DNA of 64,000 bases from Phallusia mammillata (GCA_965637545.1 OZ281494.1:2790001-2854000), one strand, 5' to 3'; positions 10,354 through 27,700 are shown, numbered from the stretch's first letter. A program made the numbers and translations. The notes: generated by a model from the letters alone, not told the origin.

Positions 10354-12051
10354 ATGAATTACATTGTAGTTTTTCTGCTGACATTGGCTGTGCTCCATGG
10401 AAAAGTTATATTTGCAGGTACTTCGTATATTTTTATTCTTTCGAATTTTCATGCATTGCATCAATGCCGATACCATTAGCGGAACCAGACTAAACCTGCG
10501 AACAAAGAAACTGACTCATTTTTTATGTCTAACAGACAAACATTCGTCATGTCTGGAATTACTCAACAGCTCTACCGAGCGACCGATGAGTGGCGTCTAC
10601 ACTTTGCACGATTCAAACGGAATTCCTTACATCGCATACTGCGACATGATCACTAACATGGGAGGTTGGACGCTGATCGCTAGCATTCATGAAAACAACA
10701 TTAGGGAACGTGAGAACAGCAACGGATACTGCACCCAGGGCGACCGGTGGTCCAGCCAGCAGGGAAACTCCCCAATTTTACCGAAGGGTGAAAACACTTG
10801 GGCGAATATGAACACCTTCGGTAACGTGGTGTCGGCGACCAGCGACGATTACAAAAATCCAGGTTACTTCGACATCGACGCCGGAGATTTGATGATTTGG
10901 CAGGTGGGATTTGTTTGTTTCTATTAGTGATGTACCAAGTATTCTGTTCATCAAATTCATTCGCCTGAATCGGCTGTTTTTTTACACATTCAGTTTTGGC
11001 CAAATAGTTTGTCACCATTTGGCCAAAATCGAAACGTTAGGATCGCAAGACCTTAACTTATGTCTTTTATGCCTTACAAGGTTCTACGTTGATGAAACAC
11101 TAATGTTTGACTGGTAGTAAAATATTCGTTTGCTTAGCCAAACCGGTCTGACGACGGTGCATCACAGCCTTCTACTTCTTTAGCTTATAGTGTTTTGCTT
11201 GTAAAGTAGGTGTTTAATGAAGTACAACGCAGTAAACAATTCAAACAACATGTTGTTTATGGTGCAAACAACGAAATGGATTAACCGAACTTAGGTGGGT
11301 GCAAAAGTCACACAATGACTTTGCGTTTTGTTGTTTCAATAACTCTGCTTTATATTTTGATTGTTAAAAGTAGATTTTGTTGCAAAATTGCTAGGTTCCA
11401 AACGAGACACCACTACAGGATTGGAGAACGTCTTCCTACCTTCGATATCGAACTGAGAACAGATTTCTCGACGCGTACGGAGACAAGGGCAACTTGTATT
11501 CGCTCTACAAAGCGTTTCCTGTCGAATCTGGTATATACTCTTGGCCGGACGACATCGGTCCTAGTGAACCTGTGGTGTTTGATGAAGGGTCGGTGGGTGA
11601 TGTGCTTCAGCATTTTGGGCCAACTGCTCAACCGTATCTTACACCGGGATATATTCAAGTAAATATTTCCTCAAACGTTGTTGTAAAGCAAATTTGCAGC
11701 TGTTCAATTTCCGGTTTGTTGAAATTCGCCACTTCAGTCATTTCTTAACCTCATGATTGTTTCAACTAAAAGTATTTTGTCGTGTTGCTAAAACTGATTT
11801 GTTTGTAGTTTAGAAACCTCTATGGGTACGATAAGGACGTAAAAGCGGCATACGCTCTATGTCCCGGAGTGAAAGTCAGCAACGATTTCACTAACGCCCA
11901 AACGGCTTGCATCGGATCAACCGGATACAACGCCTTTATAGGCCACTGTGGTGATTTTGCTGGAATGGCTGTTAGTGGATATGGTGCGGGAAAAGGATAT
12001 AGTGTCGATAAGCTGATGATTGAATCGACCTTTATGTTGTTTTACCGTTAA
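10354..12051 (+). CDS. ITLN: Intelectin A, intact, ~312 aa; exons 10354-10417, 10536-10903, 11395-11658, 11809-12051
   Basis: Signal peptide [21 protein letters not shown], fibrinogen-like [38 protein letters not shown] and C-terminal CGDF...MLFYR. All introns are GT-AG and the 939-nt CDS is open. An alternative in-frame ATG lies at 10336. Confidence 0.95.
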
Positions 12052-13278
12052 GGTCATTCGTGTAAAGCAAATAAATAAACAAACTTCATGGTGATCTGTG
12101 AAGCTTTAAAACGGCAGAAGAAACCTTTAGGGTTCAATACAGACTTTTTAGCGGAATTTAAATTAACCTCGTATGCTTGTTTCTTGTTTCTGTCCTACTG
12201 AATCTGTATCCAAATTCCTTCATACATTTTCTAAATTGTTTATTCCTAATGGTTTTGACTGCATAAATCAAAATCGTTTAAATGTAAAATAATGATAATG
12301 AGTCTGCTGTCTTTTCAAGGAACATGATCAGTGATGATCATTGATCACTAAAAACTTAAACAACATCTACTAAAAAAACCAAAGTTTATCTAAAGGACTT
12401 AACAAAATTCCTTCCGACCAACTTTTCACAAAGACATTATCGTCACCATCTGTATGTGTTAAGCCACATATCTTTGAAAACCAACATTGTTATGTCACAA
12501 AATGACTAATACATGGATAAGATTGTTGGAGAAAAATTCTCTTCTCGTGTTACTTGTGCATTGTTAAAGAAACATTGTTAGGCCCAAGAGAGACATACAC
12601 TACCAACATAAATTTGTACATGGAGGCTTAAAATCTAAAAAAAACCATAAAGTTGAGTTACGAACAAAAAAACGCTACCAAAAATAATATTAGAGAAATC
12701 ACCGTAATAAGAACAAAAAACATTTTCACAACGAGCAGGACCGTGACAAAAAAAACATGATTATTATTTTACCCACAAACCTAATGCTTTACGCAACTAT
12801 TTGGGAACGTGTGGTTTTATTATCGGAATTTTAATTTAAATGTTGATACGCGTATAGGGTGGCTTTTGTTCAACAAAGTTTTGACATTTATTGTACAATA
12901 TATTGTTTTAAACTACAAGTTGATTTTTGGTTGGCATTTTTATGTATTTGATTCTATGCTTGCATGTTCACTTATATCGAAAGTTTTATGATTAAAAAAG
13001 ATTTATCTACGTTATGCATCTCACCAATAGACCAGACAGGTTGTTAAAGATTAAAACGTGACAAAAAGTTCAGTAGGCAATTTCCGTTACATGTATTTTA
13101 TAAAAACTGCATCTTTTCCACTAACTAAACACCAAGTATTCTATAAAATACAGCCACTATTACTCACATGTGGATTTAATTATAGCAAGTACATTTAACA
13201 ACTGTCAAAAACATTTCGATGGATATAGGCATACCCAATGTTTACCAACATTTGTAGTTATTTTTTTTTCTGTTACAG

Positions 13279-24706: not shown

Positions 24707-27700
24707 TTCTTTCGTTGATGTTTTTGTCTACAACGAACAAATTACCGTGTTGTTACAAATGTGTTATGATTTGTTTCAAGGTAATTTGCCTCACATAGAA
24801 ATCTTATCTTACTTCTCTCTGTACTTCGGTTCTCTAATGATGTCGCTGATCGTATGAGCCCATTATATACTGTTCGGAGAAGAAGATATAGGTAGAAAGC
24901 AAAAATTTTATGGCAGGGGCATCTATCAGAATTGAATCTGATATCAAATCTAATATCCTGTTGTTTCATTTGGGTTAAATCAAATCCCATATAATCTAAT
25001 GGGTAGTTGAGCTTTTCTGTAACAATCACAAAGTTGTGAATAGATGTATGTGAAAAAATACAAAGAGCTCGTTGAGTTTACGACAAAGGGGTGCTGTTGC
25101 TCCCTTTAATCCACCCCCAGATTTAAACCTATGACAATCCCTTTTGCAATCGCAGATGGTTTTGTCCTCACCAACTGACCGTTCAGAATAAAACTGACTG
25201 GTCTGTGTGTGCTTTGTCATCTTTGCAGTCATGTGGTGATAATTATATCATGTGCATTTATTTAAACATATGTTGTTCATATTGATAGCCTCTGTTTCCC
25301 CATTATTAGTCGACAAACATGTTTTGTGCGTAGTTTCCGCACCTTTTTGCACAACGTTTATGTAAAACGCATTGCATACGAATTCTGTTTATTTGACAAA
25401 CTAAAGGAGTAAGATTCACACCTTTAATTTTTGTGTGATGTTCTTGGCGCTACAATCTTTACAACAAATGCGACACTACGTAAGCACCTTGTGTAATTAA
25501 ATGCTCCTTGGGTCAGTTACTACCCTAACTGATCCCTACTATTTTGCCACCAACGAGCACAGATGGCTTCGACCCGACCAACTCACAGTTTACATTCACC
25601 CTACCTAGTCCATAATGTTTTCCATACATTGAACTAATAATTTTTGAAACAATTCTCGTGTTTTTAGAGATCCATAAAATGTAATGTAATAATTTTTAAT
25701 CGATACATGTGTTTTACGAGTTAGTTGCGATTTGAAGGACAAATTATATTTGTTTTGAATGTTAAGTTACACTCCAGCCTTTTTGTTTGTTGGTGGATCA
25801 AGAGAATTTGGATCTGAATGCTTTTTGTCAGAATGATTGAAAACGAAACCAGGGTTAAATAATTAATAAAATGTTTCGCACCTAACATTCTCGGCCCTTT
25901 CAAAATTCCAGTTAAAATTGTATTTCTGTTTGGAAGACCATAAAGAAGGCGAAAATAGACCATGATTGTAAAACGCGAACCAGTATCGAATAAAGTTACT
26001 TGTCTTACGTTAATTTATCGAGTACATAAGTTCTGTAAATCACAAAATCCACAAGGAACCTTGATTTAATGCCATTAAAATAAGTCGATACTGCATGTTG
26101 GCCATTAAGTTTGCACACACTATTGTACACGGTAAAGCAGTAAATTGTCTTGGATAAATCGCTTAGTGCGCGATGGTATAAACAGGTCAGTTTAATATAG
26201 AATTGTCCACCGGTGAGAACCATGACATCTGGGTTGGCAACCAGGACCTCCGTGGGTTGCTAAACAGCAAAGTTTTTTAAGATTATCATAAAAAATCTTA
26301 TTGTCAGCAAAATGTATTGAGTACAAACCGAAGATTCAAAATACAAAACATGTATATAATTTTATAGTTAATTTGTTTTTTCAAAGAATAATATGAAAGT
26401 GTAATGAATGTAATACAAACACTTTAAAAGGGCAACAAGAATGCATTCGATAAAATTTGATTTTTACTCAAAAGTGTTTTATTTTTTTCGGTACTGTTGT
26501 AATTCGTAAAACGAAGAGAATTCGTATGCAATGCGACTTAAATCAGTTGTGCAAAAAGATGCAGAACTTTGAACAAAACGTGTTTGTCGACTAATAATAG
26601 GTAAACCAAGGCCTAACCGTGTTAGCAGCACACGTTTAAATAAACGCACATGACATAATTATCACCACGGGGGCGCAACGATGACAAAGCACACACAGAT
26701 CAGTCAGTTGTATTCTGAACGTTGAGTTGGTAAGAACAAAATCATCTGCGTTTGCCAAAGGAATTCTCATAGTTTGAAATCGGGGGTTGGATTGAAGGGA
26801 GCAATAGCACCCCCTTATCGTAAACACAAAGAGCTCTATGTACTTTTTCACATACATTCGTCAAAAACTTTGTGATTGCTACAAAAAAGCTCACCTACAC
26901 CTCAGATATAAACTAACTGAATGTAACCCAGTGAGAGGAAAGGTTTTATACCGAGGAAAATCGCCGACTCAATCCTGCTACGCTATTCTGATAGACGCCC
27001 CCTTGCAAAACAATTTCTGCTTCCTCCCTATTTATTCTTCTCCAAACAGTACAAAATGGGCTCATACAATCAGCGACATCATTAGAGAACCGAAGAACAA
27101 AGAGAAGAGAAGTAAGAGAAGATTTCTACGTTAGGCAAATGTATCAAGCAATTTAACTTGAAGCAAATAATAACACATTTGTGACAAATGTTTCATTTAT
27201 TCGTTATAGAAAAAAATCAGCGAAAGAAATGAATAAGGTTATTGTTTTGCTGCTGACATTAACTGTGCTGTGCGGAAAACCTCTATTCGCAGGTAGAACA
27301 ATGTAAAAAAAAATACTTAATCTAAGTAGTTTACGAACCTTTATCCAAATAGTGTTCTTCTCAATTTGTATCAATATGTTGAAAAATGTAGCACAGTTTT
27401 GTGGAGCCATAAAAAGTTATTAGTGCGATATTTGTATTTCTGATATGTGTAAACAGAGGCACAATCGTCATGTCTGGAACTGCTCAACAACGCCATCGAG
27501 CGACCGATGAGTGGCGTCTACACTTTGTACGATTCAAACGGAAACACTTGGGCGAATATGAACACCTTTGGTAACGTGGTGTCGGCGACCAGCGACGATT
27601 ACAAAAACCCAGGTTACTTCGACATCGACGCCGGAGATTTGATGATTTGGCAGGTGGGATTAGTTGCTTTTGCCAGGCAATTGGCCTAAGGTTGCTATGT

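Follow-up and report, generated by a model that had tools for sequence, protein, structure and literature searches.

In a large intelectin gene cluster of the sea squirt Phallusia mammillata, the low divergence of exons 2 and 3 appears to reflect young exons rather than tighter selection, and ectopic gene conversion together with unequal crossing-over, both anchored in these two exons, quite probably explains the pattern. The stretch of DNA analysed here (the window, 64,000 nucleotides) is the middle of a ~130-kb cluster on contig C1 (2.775-2.908 Mb) that holds ~25 four-exon intelectin (X-type lectin) copies, more than half of them pseudogenes. Our analysis covered 19 of these ~25 copies. The genes, fragments and duplications of the window are listed in Table 1.

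Table 1. Intelectin copies and related features in the window (positions counted from its first letter; e1-e4, exons 1-4)
Feature	Position	Strand	Details
Copy A, intact	10354..12051	+	e1 10354-10417, e2 10536-10903, e3 11395-11658, e4 11809-12051; every exon open, splice sites AG/GT
Last 111 nt of exon 2 of A, most homogenised stretch	10793-10903	+	differs by 0.9-5.4%, mostly 1.8%, from the 18 other cluster copies; recurs (differences from A) in G 27543-27653 (2), F 24116-24226 (1), D 17125-17235 (2), E 21061-21171 (3), H 62449-62559 (2)
Copy B, dead fragment	13266..13779	+	3' part of exon 3 13266-13406, intron 3, exon 4 13540-13779; the stop in exon 4 lies near its 5' end
Copy C, dead	14967..15791	+	exon 1, intron 1 with repeat, exon 2 (internal deletion, mutated donor), start of exon 3 only
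Copy D, intact	16262..17772	-	e1 17772-17709, e2 17480-17125, e3 17000-16737, e4 16504-16262
Copy E, intact	20249..21639	-	e1 21639-21576, e2 21416-21061, e3 20881-20618, e4 20482-20249
Copy F, dead	23781..24706	-	e1 24706-24643, e2 24471-24116, exon 3 only 23924-23888, exon-4 remnant 23874-23781
Copy G, dead	27229..28520	+	e1 27229-27292, e2 27457-27653 (159-nt in-frame deletion, junction 27541/27542), e3 27906-28169 (TAA at codon 64, 28095-28097), e4 28281-28520
Copy H, intact	61641..63026	-	e1 63026-62963, e2 62804-62449, e3 62273-62010, e4 61874-61641
Fragment I	60423..60623	-	exon 3 only, 3' part; 94% identity with E and H
Fragment Z	3893..4159	-	A-like; frame-shifted exon 1, intron 1, exon 2 up to nt 89
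Inverted F/G pair with spacer	24387..27541	.	arms 24387-25411 and 26492-27541
Segmental duplication with E and F	19937..25661	.	twin from 61337 past the window end (H and L014)
Inner 3.4-kb unit	21044-24465		exon 2 of E to exon 2 of F; three occurrences, the third outside the window, in copy L008

Family assignment was made by exon-wise PDB matches, with individual exons as queries. Exon 2 of copy A matched human intelectin-1 (6USC, 4WMQ; E 7e-37) and XEEL (E 5e-35), and its exon 4 matched solved intelectins at E 2e-10 to 1e-9, human intelectin-1 at 1e-9 among them, which places the predicted protein in the intelectin/X-type lectin fold family over both the fibrinogen-like and the intelectin-specific parts. 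Intelectins are secreted proteins of ~300-320 residues with an N-terminal signal peptide. The four exons of copy A sum to ~312 codons, and in every copy the product of exon 1 is a short hydrophobic leader, a putative signal peptide.

The earlier note had singled out the last 111 nt of exon 2 as differing at only two sites between intact A and dead G. On recomputation we obtained the same two differences, with the 37 encoded residues identical. Among the six window copies that carry the stretch, dead F and G included, 0-3 sites differ, and the translations of A, D, E, F, G and H agree in all 37 residues (6/6), as had been reported. Adjacent introns were said to lose alignment soon after the exon edge, and they do, reaching random identity within ~20 nt: over all pairs of the 19 cluster copies, mean ungapped identity falls from 0.97 over the final 60 nt of exon 2 to 0.77 and then 0.60 in successive 10-nt bins at the start of intron 2, and is ~0.32 (random) further in. 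With intron homology scored by z-scores against shuffles, ~70% of pairs did not rise above the shuffled controls. Permissive intron alignments, which gave ~75% identity for every pair, near the shuffled baseline, were set aside as not informative. Identity cliffs at exon edges, present in all pairs, are also the expectation under selection.

Synonymous sites separate the exons more sharply. Median dS (NG, 120-171 pairs) is 0.54 in exon 1, 0.12 in exon 2, 0.22 in exon 3 and 0.71 in exon 4, so that exons 2-3 lie 3-6 times below exon 4 in synonymous divergence, while the introns are saturated. For in-window pairs, synonymous differences in exons 2 and 3 together versus exon 4 gave Fisher P values from 0.05 down to 7e-8. 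In contrast, dN/dS is nearly equal (0.28, 0.31 and 0.30 in exons 2, 3 and 4). Because dS falls with dN while their ratio stays constant, recent coalescence rather than tighter selection is indicated. Exon synonymous divergence equal to intron divergence, the outcome named beforehand as contrary to exchange, did not appear. Exon-2 dS is 0.095 in pseudogene pairs versus 0.21 in intact pairs; exchange may predate or postdate the death of a copy.

Different parts of a gene have different histories. Separate trees, the check that the earlier note had asked for, were built for exon 2, for exon 3 and for the modules on either side of them: a 5′ module made up of the promoter, intron 1 and exon 1 with its putative signal peptide, and a 3′ module comprising intron 3, the part of exon 4 that holds the binding site, and the 3′ flank. 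By AU tests the four trees are strongly incongruent, each rejecting the others (p-AU 0.012 to 1e-60). Copy D groups with L002 at its 5′ end and with A at its 3′ end, with bootstrap 100 for both, and is best read as a mosaic, its 5′ module being of L002 type and its 3′ module of A type. The A-type exon 4 previously ascribed to D is borne out (81% identical, clade bootstrap 100). Its supposed F-type exon 3 acceptor is not; it comes down to a 12-nt identity, and the 18 of the last 30 intron bases that match F are equalled in D versus G and D versus L014. For F, the G-type exon 1 stands (92%), and the likeness to G extends through intron 1 (83%) and ~1 kb of 5′ flank (~80%), but the proposed resemblance of its 94-nt exon-4 remnant to E and H does not discriminate (E 88%, H 86%, G 86%, L008 91%).

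Copies E and H are recent duplicates with introns 98% identical, and the segmental duplication that carries E and F is 94.9% identical to its H/L014 twin over 5.8 kb. L008, the third occurrence of the inner unit, is an intact gene whose exon 3-4 half differs. Several blocks stop where exon 2 begins or 11-27 nt (about 17) past its end, as would be expected if exons served as homology anchors. The proposal that conserved exons anchor exchange between paralogues is thus supported by tree incongruence, by the dS contrast and by block ends.

Patches of identity bounded on both sides occur in A, in L018 and in the inverted dead pair F/G. Compared with the main group, L018 diverges by 12-45% over exon-2 nt 1-240 (one 30-nt window, 4.7%), by 7.5% at nt 241-270 and by ~1% at nt 271-356; beyond exon 2, its intron 2 is unalignable and its exon 3 is 6-26% divergent. 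Copy A differs from cluster copies by 8-23% in the first 245 nt of exon 2 and by 8-16% in exon 3. Between F and G, identity is 95-99% in exon 2 (97.5%) but drops to 81-83% across flank and intron 1 and to 74% across intron 2. Five or fewer differences in 197 nt have P = 1e-10 at the flank rate (P = 0.008 for synonymous sites alone). Within single exons, 31-49% of informative site pairs fail the four-gamete test, with an exon-2 diversity of only ~5%; a PHI-type test inside single exons was not significant. A common stop at exon-3 codon 72 in L007 and L016 was considered as a sign of transfer and put aside as not decisive, the codon being TAG in one versus TAA in the other. Low dS in the converted region, incongruent segments and two-sided tracts mark the cluster as a probable case of concerted evolution by interlocus gene conversion.

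We propose that non-allelic homologous recombination repeatedly overwrites exon 2 and, to a lesser degree, both exon 3 and the final ~60 nt of exon 4. Short-tract gene conversion would be the main mode, with occasional unequal crossing-over, and the overwritten stretches would coalesce recently in all copies, live or dead. The 5′ and 3′ modules would each escape overwriting and persist as old lineages, and the copies would be mosaic because junctions inside exons 2-3 re-pair these old modules. Introns may have lost their convertibility through indels, which are unacceptable in the exons of working genes; with heteroduplex confined to exons, the homogenised domain would then have shrunk to the exon edges plus ~20 nt. 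We infer that such an indel ratchet accounts for the exon-edge cliffs. Exon-2 GC3 is 0.65-0.69, versus 0.39-0.43 in exons 3 and 4 and 0.38-0.53 for exon 2 in other clusters, suggesting that conversion in this cluster is GC-biased. Exon 3, despite being homogenised too, has no such rise in GC3.

Birth-and-death driven solely by unequal crossing-over would produce chimeras with junctions in exons 2-3 and recent junction ancestry, with no short-tract conversion. We regard this as unlikely. It predicts a one-sided switch of identity, whereas the patches in A, L018 and F/G are bounded on both sides, and between the inverted F and G a crossover would flip the spacer and not homogenise the arms. In essentially all 171 pairs, exon 2 is younger than the sequence on either side of it, and four-gamete failure is high inside exons of 264-356 nt; neither sits well with crossovers as the sole process. 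What such crossovers do explain are the 1.3-5.8 kb blocks that end at exon 2, the recent chimera L008 with its E/H-type 5′ half and other 3′ half, and the death of more than half of the copies, as birth-and-death expects.

Purifying selection alone, with exons 2-3 as a constrained structural core down to their synonymous sites (splicing enhancers, RNA structure, codon use), exon 4 and introns drifting, and no exchange, is very unlikely and already largely refuted. The comparison with other clusters of the same genome, a partial substitute for sister-species orthologues, is informative here. Between the cluster on C1 and those on C2, C3, C5 and C6, the last 37 exon-2 codons have pS 0.53-1.09, saturated like exons 3 and 4, and in the other clusters exon 4 is not in excess of exon 2 in divergence; these codons appear to carry no built-in synonymous constraint. 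Their saturated synonymous sites count against selection alone, even though the 37 residues are conserved as protein between clusters (pN 0.14-0.23), and exon-edge cliffs and a conserved ~20 nt of intron by the donor site are also as selection would have them. Selection alone likewise fails to predict equal dN/dS in exons 2, 3 and 4 with dS falling alongside dN, dead copies at least as alike as live ones, incongruent segment trees, or the change in L018 from 12-45% to ~1% divergence within one exon.

It is highly improbable that assembly collapse or polishing made the paralogous exons alike, or that 5′ and 3′ halves were mis-joined. In the probable source individual, no short-read contig uniquely crosses the inner part of exon 2 or exon 3, but contigs of the source run have zero differences from the unique parts and reach from each exon edge into the adjoining intron. 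Copy-specific differences remain in exons 2-3, and polishing would not yield raised GC3. In the DNA runs of two other individuals, from other studies, contigs of exons 2 and 3 are multi-copy, resemble the window at 95-99% and stand at many-fold the depth of the few unique pieces; depth is a weak measure, but homogeneity is thus not confined to the present assembly. No unique short-read contig runs through the near-identical inner stretch of exon 2 (283 nt) or of exon 3 (135 nt), and the mosaic structure therefore depends on the long-read assembly being correct. In the single RNA-like run X9, coverage fell on a repeat only and none on intelectin genes. RNA-mediated conversion, in which a spliced transcript or cDNA template copies exon sequence only and tracts would stop at exon edges, is scarcely credible given that homogenisation takes in the first 17-20 nt of intron 2, intron loss occurs in no copy, and neither exon 1 nor exon 4, although part of the same transcript, is homogenised.

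Dead copies had also been put forward as a reservoir of binding-site variants. Dead B and G do keep near-complete exon 4 sequences, full length and open in G and 240 nt with one stop in B; the exon 4 of B is closest to those of dead L004 (90%) and G (86%). The reservoir idea itself fared badly. Exon 4 is the least exchanged part of the gene: apart from the recent duplicates E and H, nearest exon-4 pairs are 81-90% identical (10-19% different), and the exon 4 of an intact copy shares 85-89% identity with that of its nearest dead copy. In a run-length test that excluded gaps, the single exon-4 tract at P<0.001, and 5/6 of the top-ranked tracts, fell within nt 163-231 of the conserved 3′ part; no significant common run was found in nt 1-160, and none in the binding loops, at this threshold. 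Nor was pseudogene-to-intact transfer seen in the exon-4 comparison among the analysed cluster copies. An excess of exon-4 differences between E and H was considered as a tract from a third copy, but the 10 differences proved to be scattered. A broader proposal, which we consider quite unlikely, is that exons 2-3 are kept as anchors through which ~8 old promoter/signal-peptide modules are reassorted with ~8 old binding-site exon-4 lineages, those now surviving mostly in dead copies included, as combinatorial lectin diversification, germline or even somatic, and not as a by-product of ectopic recombination. On this reading L008, in which a 99% E/H-like 5′ half is joined to an exon 4 most closely related to dead copies, may be an instance of such a lineage restored to a working gene.

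The binding sites themselves were compared by alignment to 4WMQ. We take the residues of the human-type ligand site to be N260, E262, H263, E274, W288 and Y297. The E274 position is N in 6/6 window copies; the E262 position is Q in A, P in D and E in the others; H263 is replaced by T, A or K; W288 by V, A, I, F or Y; and the Y297 position holds Y, L or W. With this residue list and alignment, the human-type site was absent from the six window copies, and human binding chemistry is probably not retained in them.

Interlocus gene conversion with persisting divergent islands is known from mammalian gene pairs (PMC2720389) and copepod GOT1 paralogues (PMC3728101). As in those concerted tandem paralogues, conversion here keeps some stretches alike while adjacent regions stay old, copies are mosaic with incongruent segment trees, and the divergent islands coincide with a functionally distinct part of the protein. 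Unlike them, this cluster has ~25 copies, more than half dead, a homogenised domain trimmed to two exons plus ~20 nt, and raised GC3 in the most homogenised exon only. The mouse Itln cluster, of the same protein family and likewise local with pseudogenes, shows birth-and-death, polymorphic pseudogenes, deletions and variation at carbohydrate-contact positions, among which Y297 and H263 are named, and its authors consider conversion between recent duplicates likely (PMC8324875). There, however, at most six young copies are present and conversion was assumed, not analysed, whereas the cluster described here is old (exon-4 dS ~0.7) and much larger, and the exon-by-exon contrast was measured. In Biomphalaria, conversion has been invoked for the diversity of the FREP multigene family of fibrinogen-related immune lectins, as it is for the lectin family here, with diversification reported as somatic and in the IgSF exon (PMC12074976). 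Conversion in our cluster instead homogenises, does not diversify, and is known from germline paralogue comparison only.

A further comparison is with the chicken. Chicken immunoglobulin V pseudogenes template antigen-receptor diversification, with the variable region as the conversion target and transfer that is directional and somatic. The cluster resembles that system in having dead copies with variant binding regions near working genes and conserved flanks that could guide conversion. It differs in that variable exon 4 is least exchanged, in no live gene was a tract derived from a pseudogene found, and there is no sign of somatic events. The idea that pseudogenes feed a generator of diversity finds no support in the data.

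Taken together, the intelectin cluster is a well-documented new example, in a new family, of a known process. It is an unusually clean case: dN and dS both fall 3-6 fold in two exons at constant dN/dS, and within-genome controls tell recent coalescence from selective constraint. Dating of duplications, assignment of orthologues and scans for selection in sea-squirt intelectins will go wrong if based on exons 2-3, the history being retained only in exon 1, exon 4 and the introns. The old exon-4 lineages differ at positions corresponding to ligand-contact residues of human intelectin-1, which predicts a separate glycan specificity for each lineage.

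A single gene family is represented in the window by ten copies or fragments. In database searches run one exon at a time, exon 2 of copy A matched human intelectin-1 and Xenopus XEEL with E values of 1e-35 to 1e-37, and its exon 4 gave matches at about 1e-9. By sequence similarity, the family is that of the intelectins (X-type lectins). Each gene has four coding exons, the dimensions of which are listed in the table. Four copies (A, D, E and H) are intact. F is missing most of exons 3 and 4; in G, exon 2 has lost 159 nt in frame and exon 3 is interrupted by a stop; only fragments remain of B, C, I and Z. 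A weak exon-4-like remnant (60980–61183; ~65–70% identity), located between H and the lone exon-3 fragment I, is probably the wreck of another copy. The array extends beyond the window on both sides to ~132 kb and ~25 copies, 19 of which (8 intact, 11 dead) have an exon 2. Copies elsewhere than in the window carry L-numbers. The window also holds a second tandem family, and a segment at 29650–32980 is 86% like a stretch ~90 kb further along the cluster, which implies that both tandem families were duplicated together.

Features of the intelectin array, and identity between copies F and G
Feature	Position or length	Description
Exon 1	64 nt	codes signal-like leader; phase-1 intron after
Exon 2	356–368 nt	coding
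Exon 3	264 nt	coding
Exon 4	234–243 nt	coding
3.4-kb unit	21044–24465	exon 2 of E to exon 2 of F; clearest case of exon-2 ends
F vs G, 5′ flank		81% identity
F vs G, intron 1		83% identity
F vs G, intron 2		74% identity
F vs G, exon 2 (two surviving parts)		95% and 99% identity
5′ flank of copy A	7478–10294	several direct and inverted repeats, 70–660 nt, 72–86% alike
Second tandem family	29500–52700	self-matches 67–82%, spaced every 4–5 kb

The earlier note had singled out the last 111 nt of exon 2 (10793–10903 in A) as nearly invariant beside introns that lose alignment, and both observations hold. Six instances of the stretch lie in the window; they differ at 0–3 sites, always synonymously. 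Mean identity across every pair of the 19 copies is 0.97 in the final 60 nt of exon 2; in intron 2 it is 0.77 in the first 10-nt bin and 0.60 in the second, and beyond these 20 nt it is ~0.32, the random level. Comparable cliffs mark the remaining edges of exons 2 and 3, and when the 20 nt beside the exons are excluded, intron alignments are at the level of shuffled sequence in ~70% of pairs.

Maximum-likelihood trees were built for four segments: a 5′ module (flank, exon 1 and intron 1), exon 2, exon 3, and a 3′ module (intron 3, exon 4 and flank). The trees proved incongruent, as a conversion system had been expected to make them; the data of each segment reject the trees of the others (p-AU 0.012 to 1e-60), and the disagreements are highly supported. 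D groups with L002 in the 5′ tree and with A in the 3′ tree, each with bootstrap 100. L011 groups with L010 in the 5′ tree (bootstrap 66, within a bootstrap-96 G-type clade) and with L018 in the 3′ tree (bootstrap 100), and L008 joins E and H at its 5′ end and L004 at its 3′ end. The exon-2 and exon-3 trees are star-like and shallow, with branches of 0.003–0.08 as against 0.3–0.8 in the module trees.

In L018 and copy A, patches of similarity within exon 2 are also bounded on both sides. Among intact members L018 is the most divergent. Its distance from the main group is 12–45% over exon-2 nt 1–240 (4.7% in one 30-nt window), 7.5% at nt 241–270 and ~1% at nt 271–356; the intron that follows has no homology, and exon 3 is 6–26% divergent. 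Copy A has the same pattern: it differs from each other copy by 8–23% over nt 1–245 of exon 2, mostly by 1.8% in the last 111 nt, and by 8–16% in exon 3. Such patches argue for conversion, since crossing-over would switch one side only. Within single exons, 31–49% of informative site pairs fail the four-gamete test, with exon-2 diversity of just ~5%.

Exchange with ends in exon 2 also occurs on a larger scale. Long homology blocks in the cluster end recurrently at exon 2 plus 11–27 nt, or at the exon-2 start. Both the E/F block and its 95% twin, which holds H (19937–25661 vs 61337 onward), contain the 3.4-kb unit. A third occurrence of the unit, outside the window, couples an E-like 5′ half (flank 99%, exon 1 identical) with an intron 2, exon 3 and exon 4 of another type, and the intact gene L008 is the product of these two halves. 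The unit and L008 thus indicate unequal crossing-over, or very long conversion, with exon-2 ends, a process that can make new live combinations.

Selection on the exons is the alternative to exchange. By the Nei-Gojobori method (120–171 pairs), median dS is 0.54, 0.12, 0.22 and 0.71 in exons 1 to 4, and dN/dS is 0.28, 0.31 and 0.30 in exons 2, 3 and 4. Tighter purifying selection would cut dN alone, so the joint lowering of dN and dS in exons 2 and 3 indicates a younger common ancestor. Among in-window pairs, synonymous differences in exons 2 and 3 combined against exon 4 gave Fisher P values from 0.05 down to 7e-8. Dead copies are no more divergent in exon 2 than live ones, with dS of 0.095 between pseudogenes and 0.21 between intact genes. 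For F and G, both dead and arranged head-to-head, the excess similarity of exon 2 is significant at all sites (P = 1e-10) and at synonymous sites only (P = 0.008). Two further dead, head-to-head copies, L007 and L016 (regions of C1:2902418–2902768 and 2906166–2906516), have unrelated 5′ modules and share a stop position at exon-3 codon 72, as TAG and TAA; conversion may have spread a disabling mutation between them, or the match may be coincidental.

As a control for constraint, the cluster was compared with intelectin clusters on four other contigs. Between clusters, the last 37 codons of exon 2 have pS of 0.53–1.09, with exons 3 and 4 equally saturated, and the encoded protein is conserved despite this saturation; the comparison with these four contigs gave no sign of a built-in synonymous constraint on exon 2. 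The excess of exon-4 over exon-2 dS was absent in the other clusters examined. GC3 in the cluster is 0.65–0.69 in exon 2 vs 0.39–0.43 in exons 3–4, exon 2 of other clusters has 0.38–0.53, and GC at codon positions 1–2 is equal throughout. Exon 2 is the most homogenised exon, and its raised value is consistent with GC-biased conversion. The scaling of dS with dN, the similarity of dead copies, the constraint control and GC3 point to exchange rather than selection. A separate cluster of at least four copies (L028–L030, C6:3.305–3.324 Mb), in which all compared codons are identical, consists of very recent tandem duplicates or is a freshly homogenised array.

Contigs from the probable source run show zero differences to the unique parts of the window and link every exon edge with its introns. 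No unique contig of this run passes right through the interior of exon 2 or exon 3, so the module pairings depend on the long-read assembly. For copy A, contigs of two other individuals were confined to exons 2 and 3 and the exon-4 tail; their depth was many-fold that of unique pieces, which implies that those genomes, too, contain numerous nearly identical exon copies. The introns and flanks of copy A (10200–12200) had no DNA contigs at ≥93% in these individuals, which points to strong non-coding polymorphism or to absence of the copy (presence/absence variation). Intron 1 of the dead copy C contains a very high-copy repeat (15216–15335) with summed unitig depths of ~3e5, 1.6e4 and 1e5 in three DNA runs; coverage by an RNA-like run was limited to this repeat within the stretch.

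Exon 4 aligns with the region of human intelectin-1 that bears ligand-contact residues. Opposite W288 and Y297, both on the general list of contact positions, window copies have V, A, I, F or Y, and Y, L or W, respectively. The list is backed in part by PMC8324875. Exon-4 dN/dS is ordinary, at 0.3. Pseudogenes had been proposed as a reservoir of binding-site variants, and this part of the idea is not supported. The exon-4 lineages are old, with nearest pairs 81–90% identical when the recent E/H pair is left out. Intact and dead copies occur within one lineage (L002/G, L008/L004, E/H with L010, and L018/L011), and no recent transfer between such members is visible. In run tests inside exon 4, the lone tract at P<0.001 and 5 of the 6 top-ranked tracts sit in the conserved 3′ part. 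Dead copies keep variant exon 4, and nothing in these sequences demonstrates its use. Between the recent duplicates E and H, 10 of 234 exon-4 sites differ (4.3%; 20249–20482 vs 61641–61874), as against 0.8–1.5% in exons 2–3 and ~2% in introns; the differences, including I vs F at the residue aligned to W288, are scattered and form no copied tract.

Taken together, incongruent trees, low dS in exons 2–3 and bounded patches support conversion between paralogues with conserved exons as anchors; of the original proposal, only the reservoir lacks support. No paper on such conversion in ascidian intelectins was found in our literature search. Concerted evolution driven by conversion, with islands of divergence, is well described (PMC2720389, PMC3728101), and intelectin clusters undergo birth-and-death evolution in which conversion is likely (PMC8324875). 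The Phallusia mammillata cluster is a further instance of this known process.
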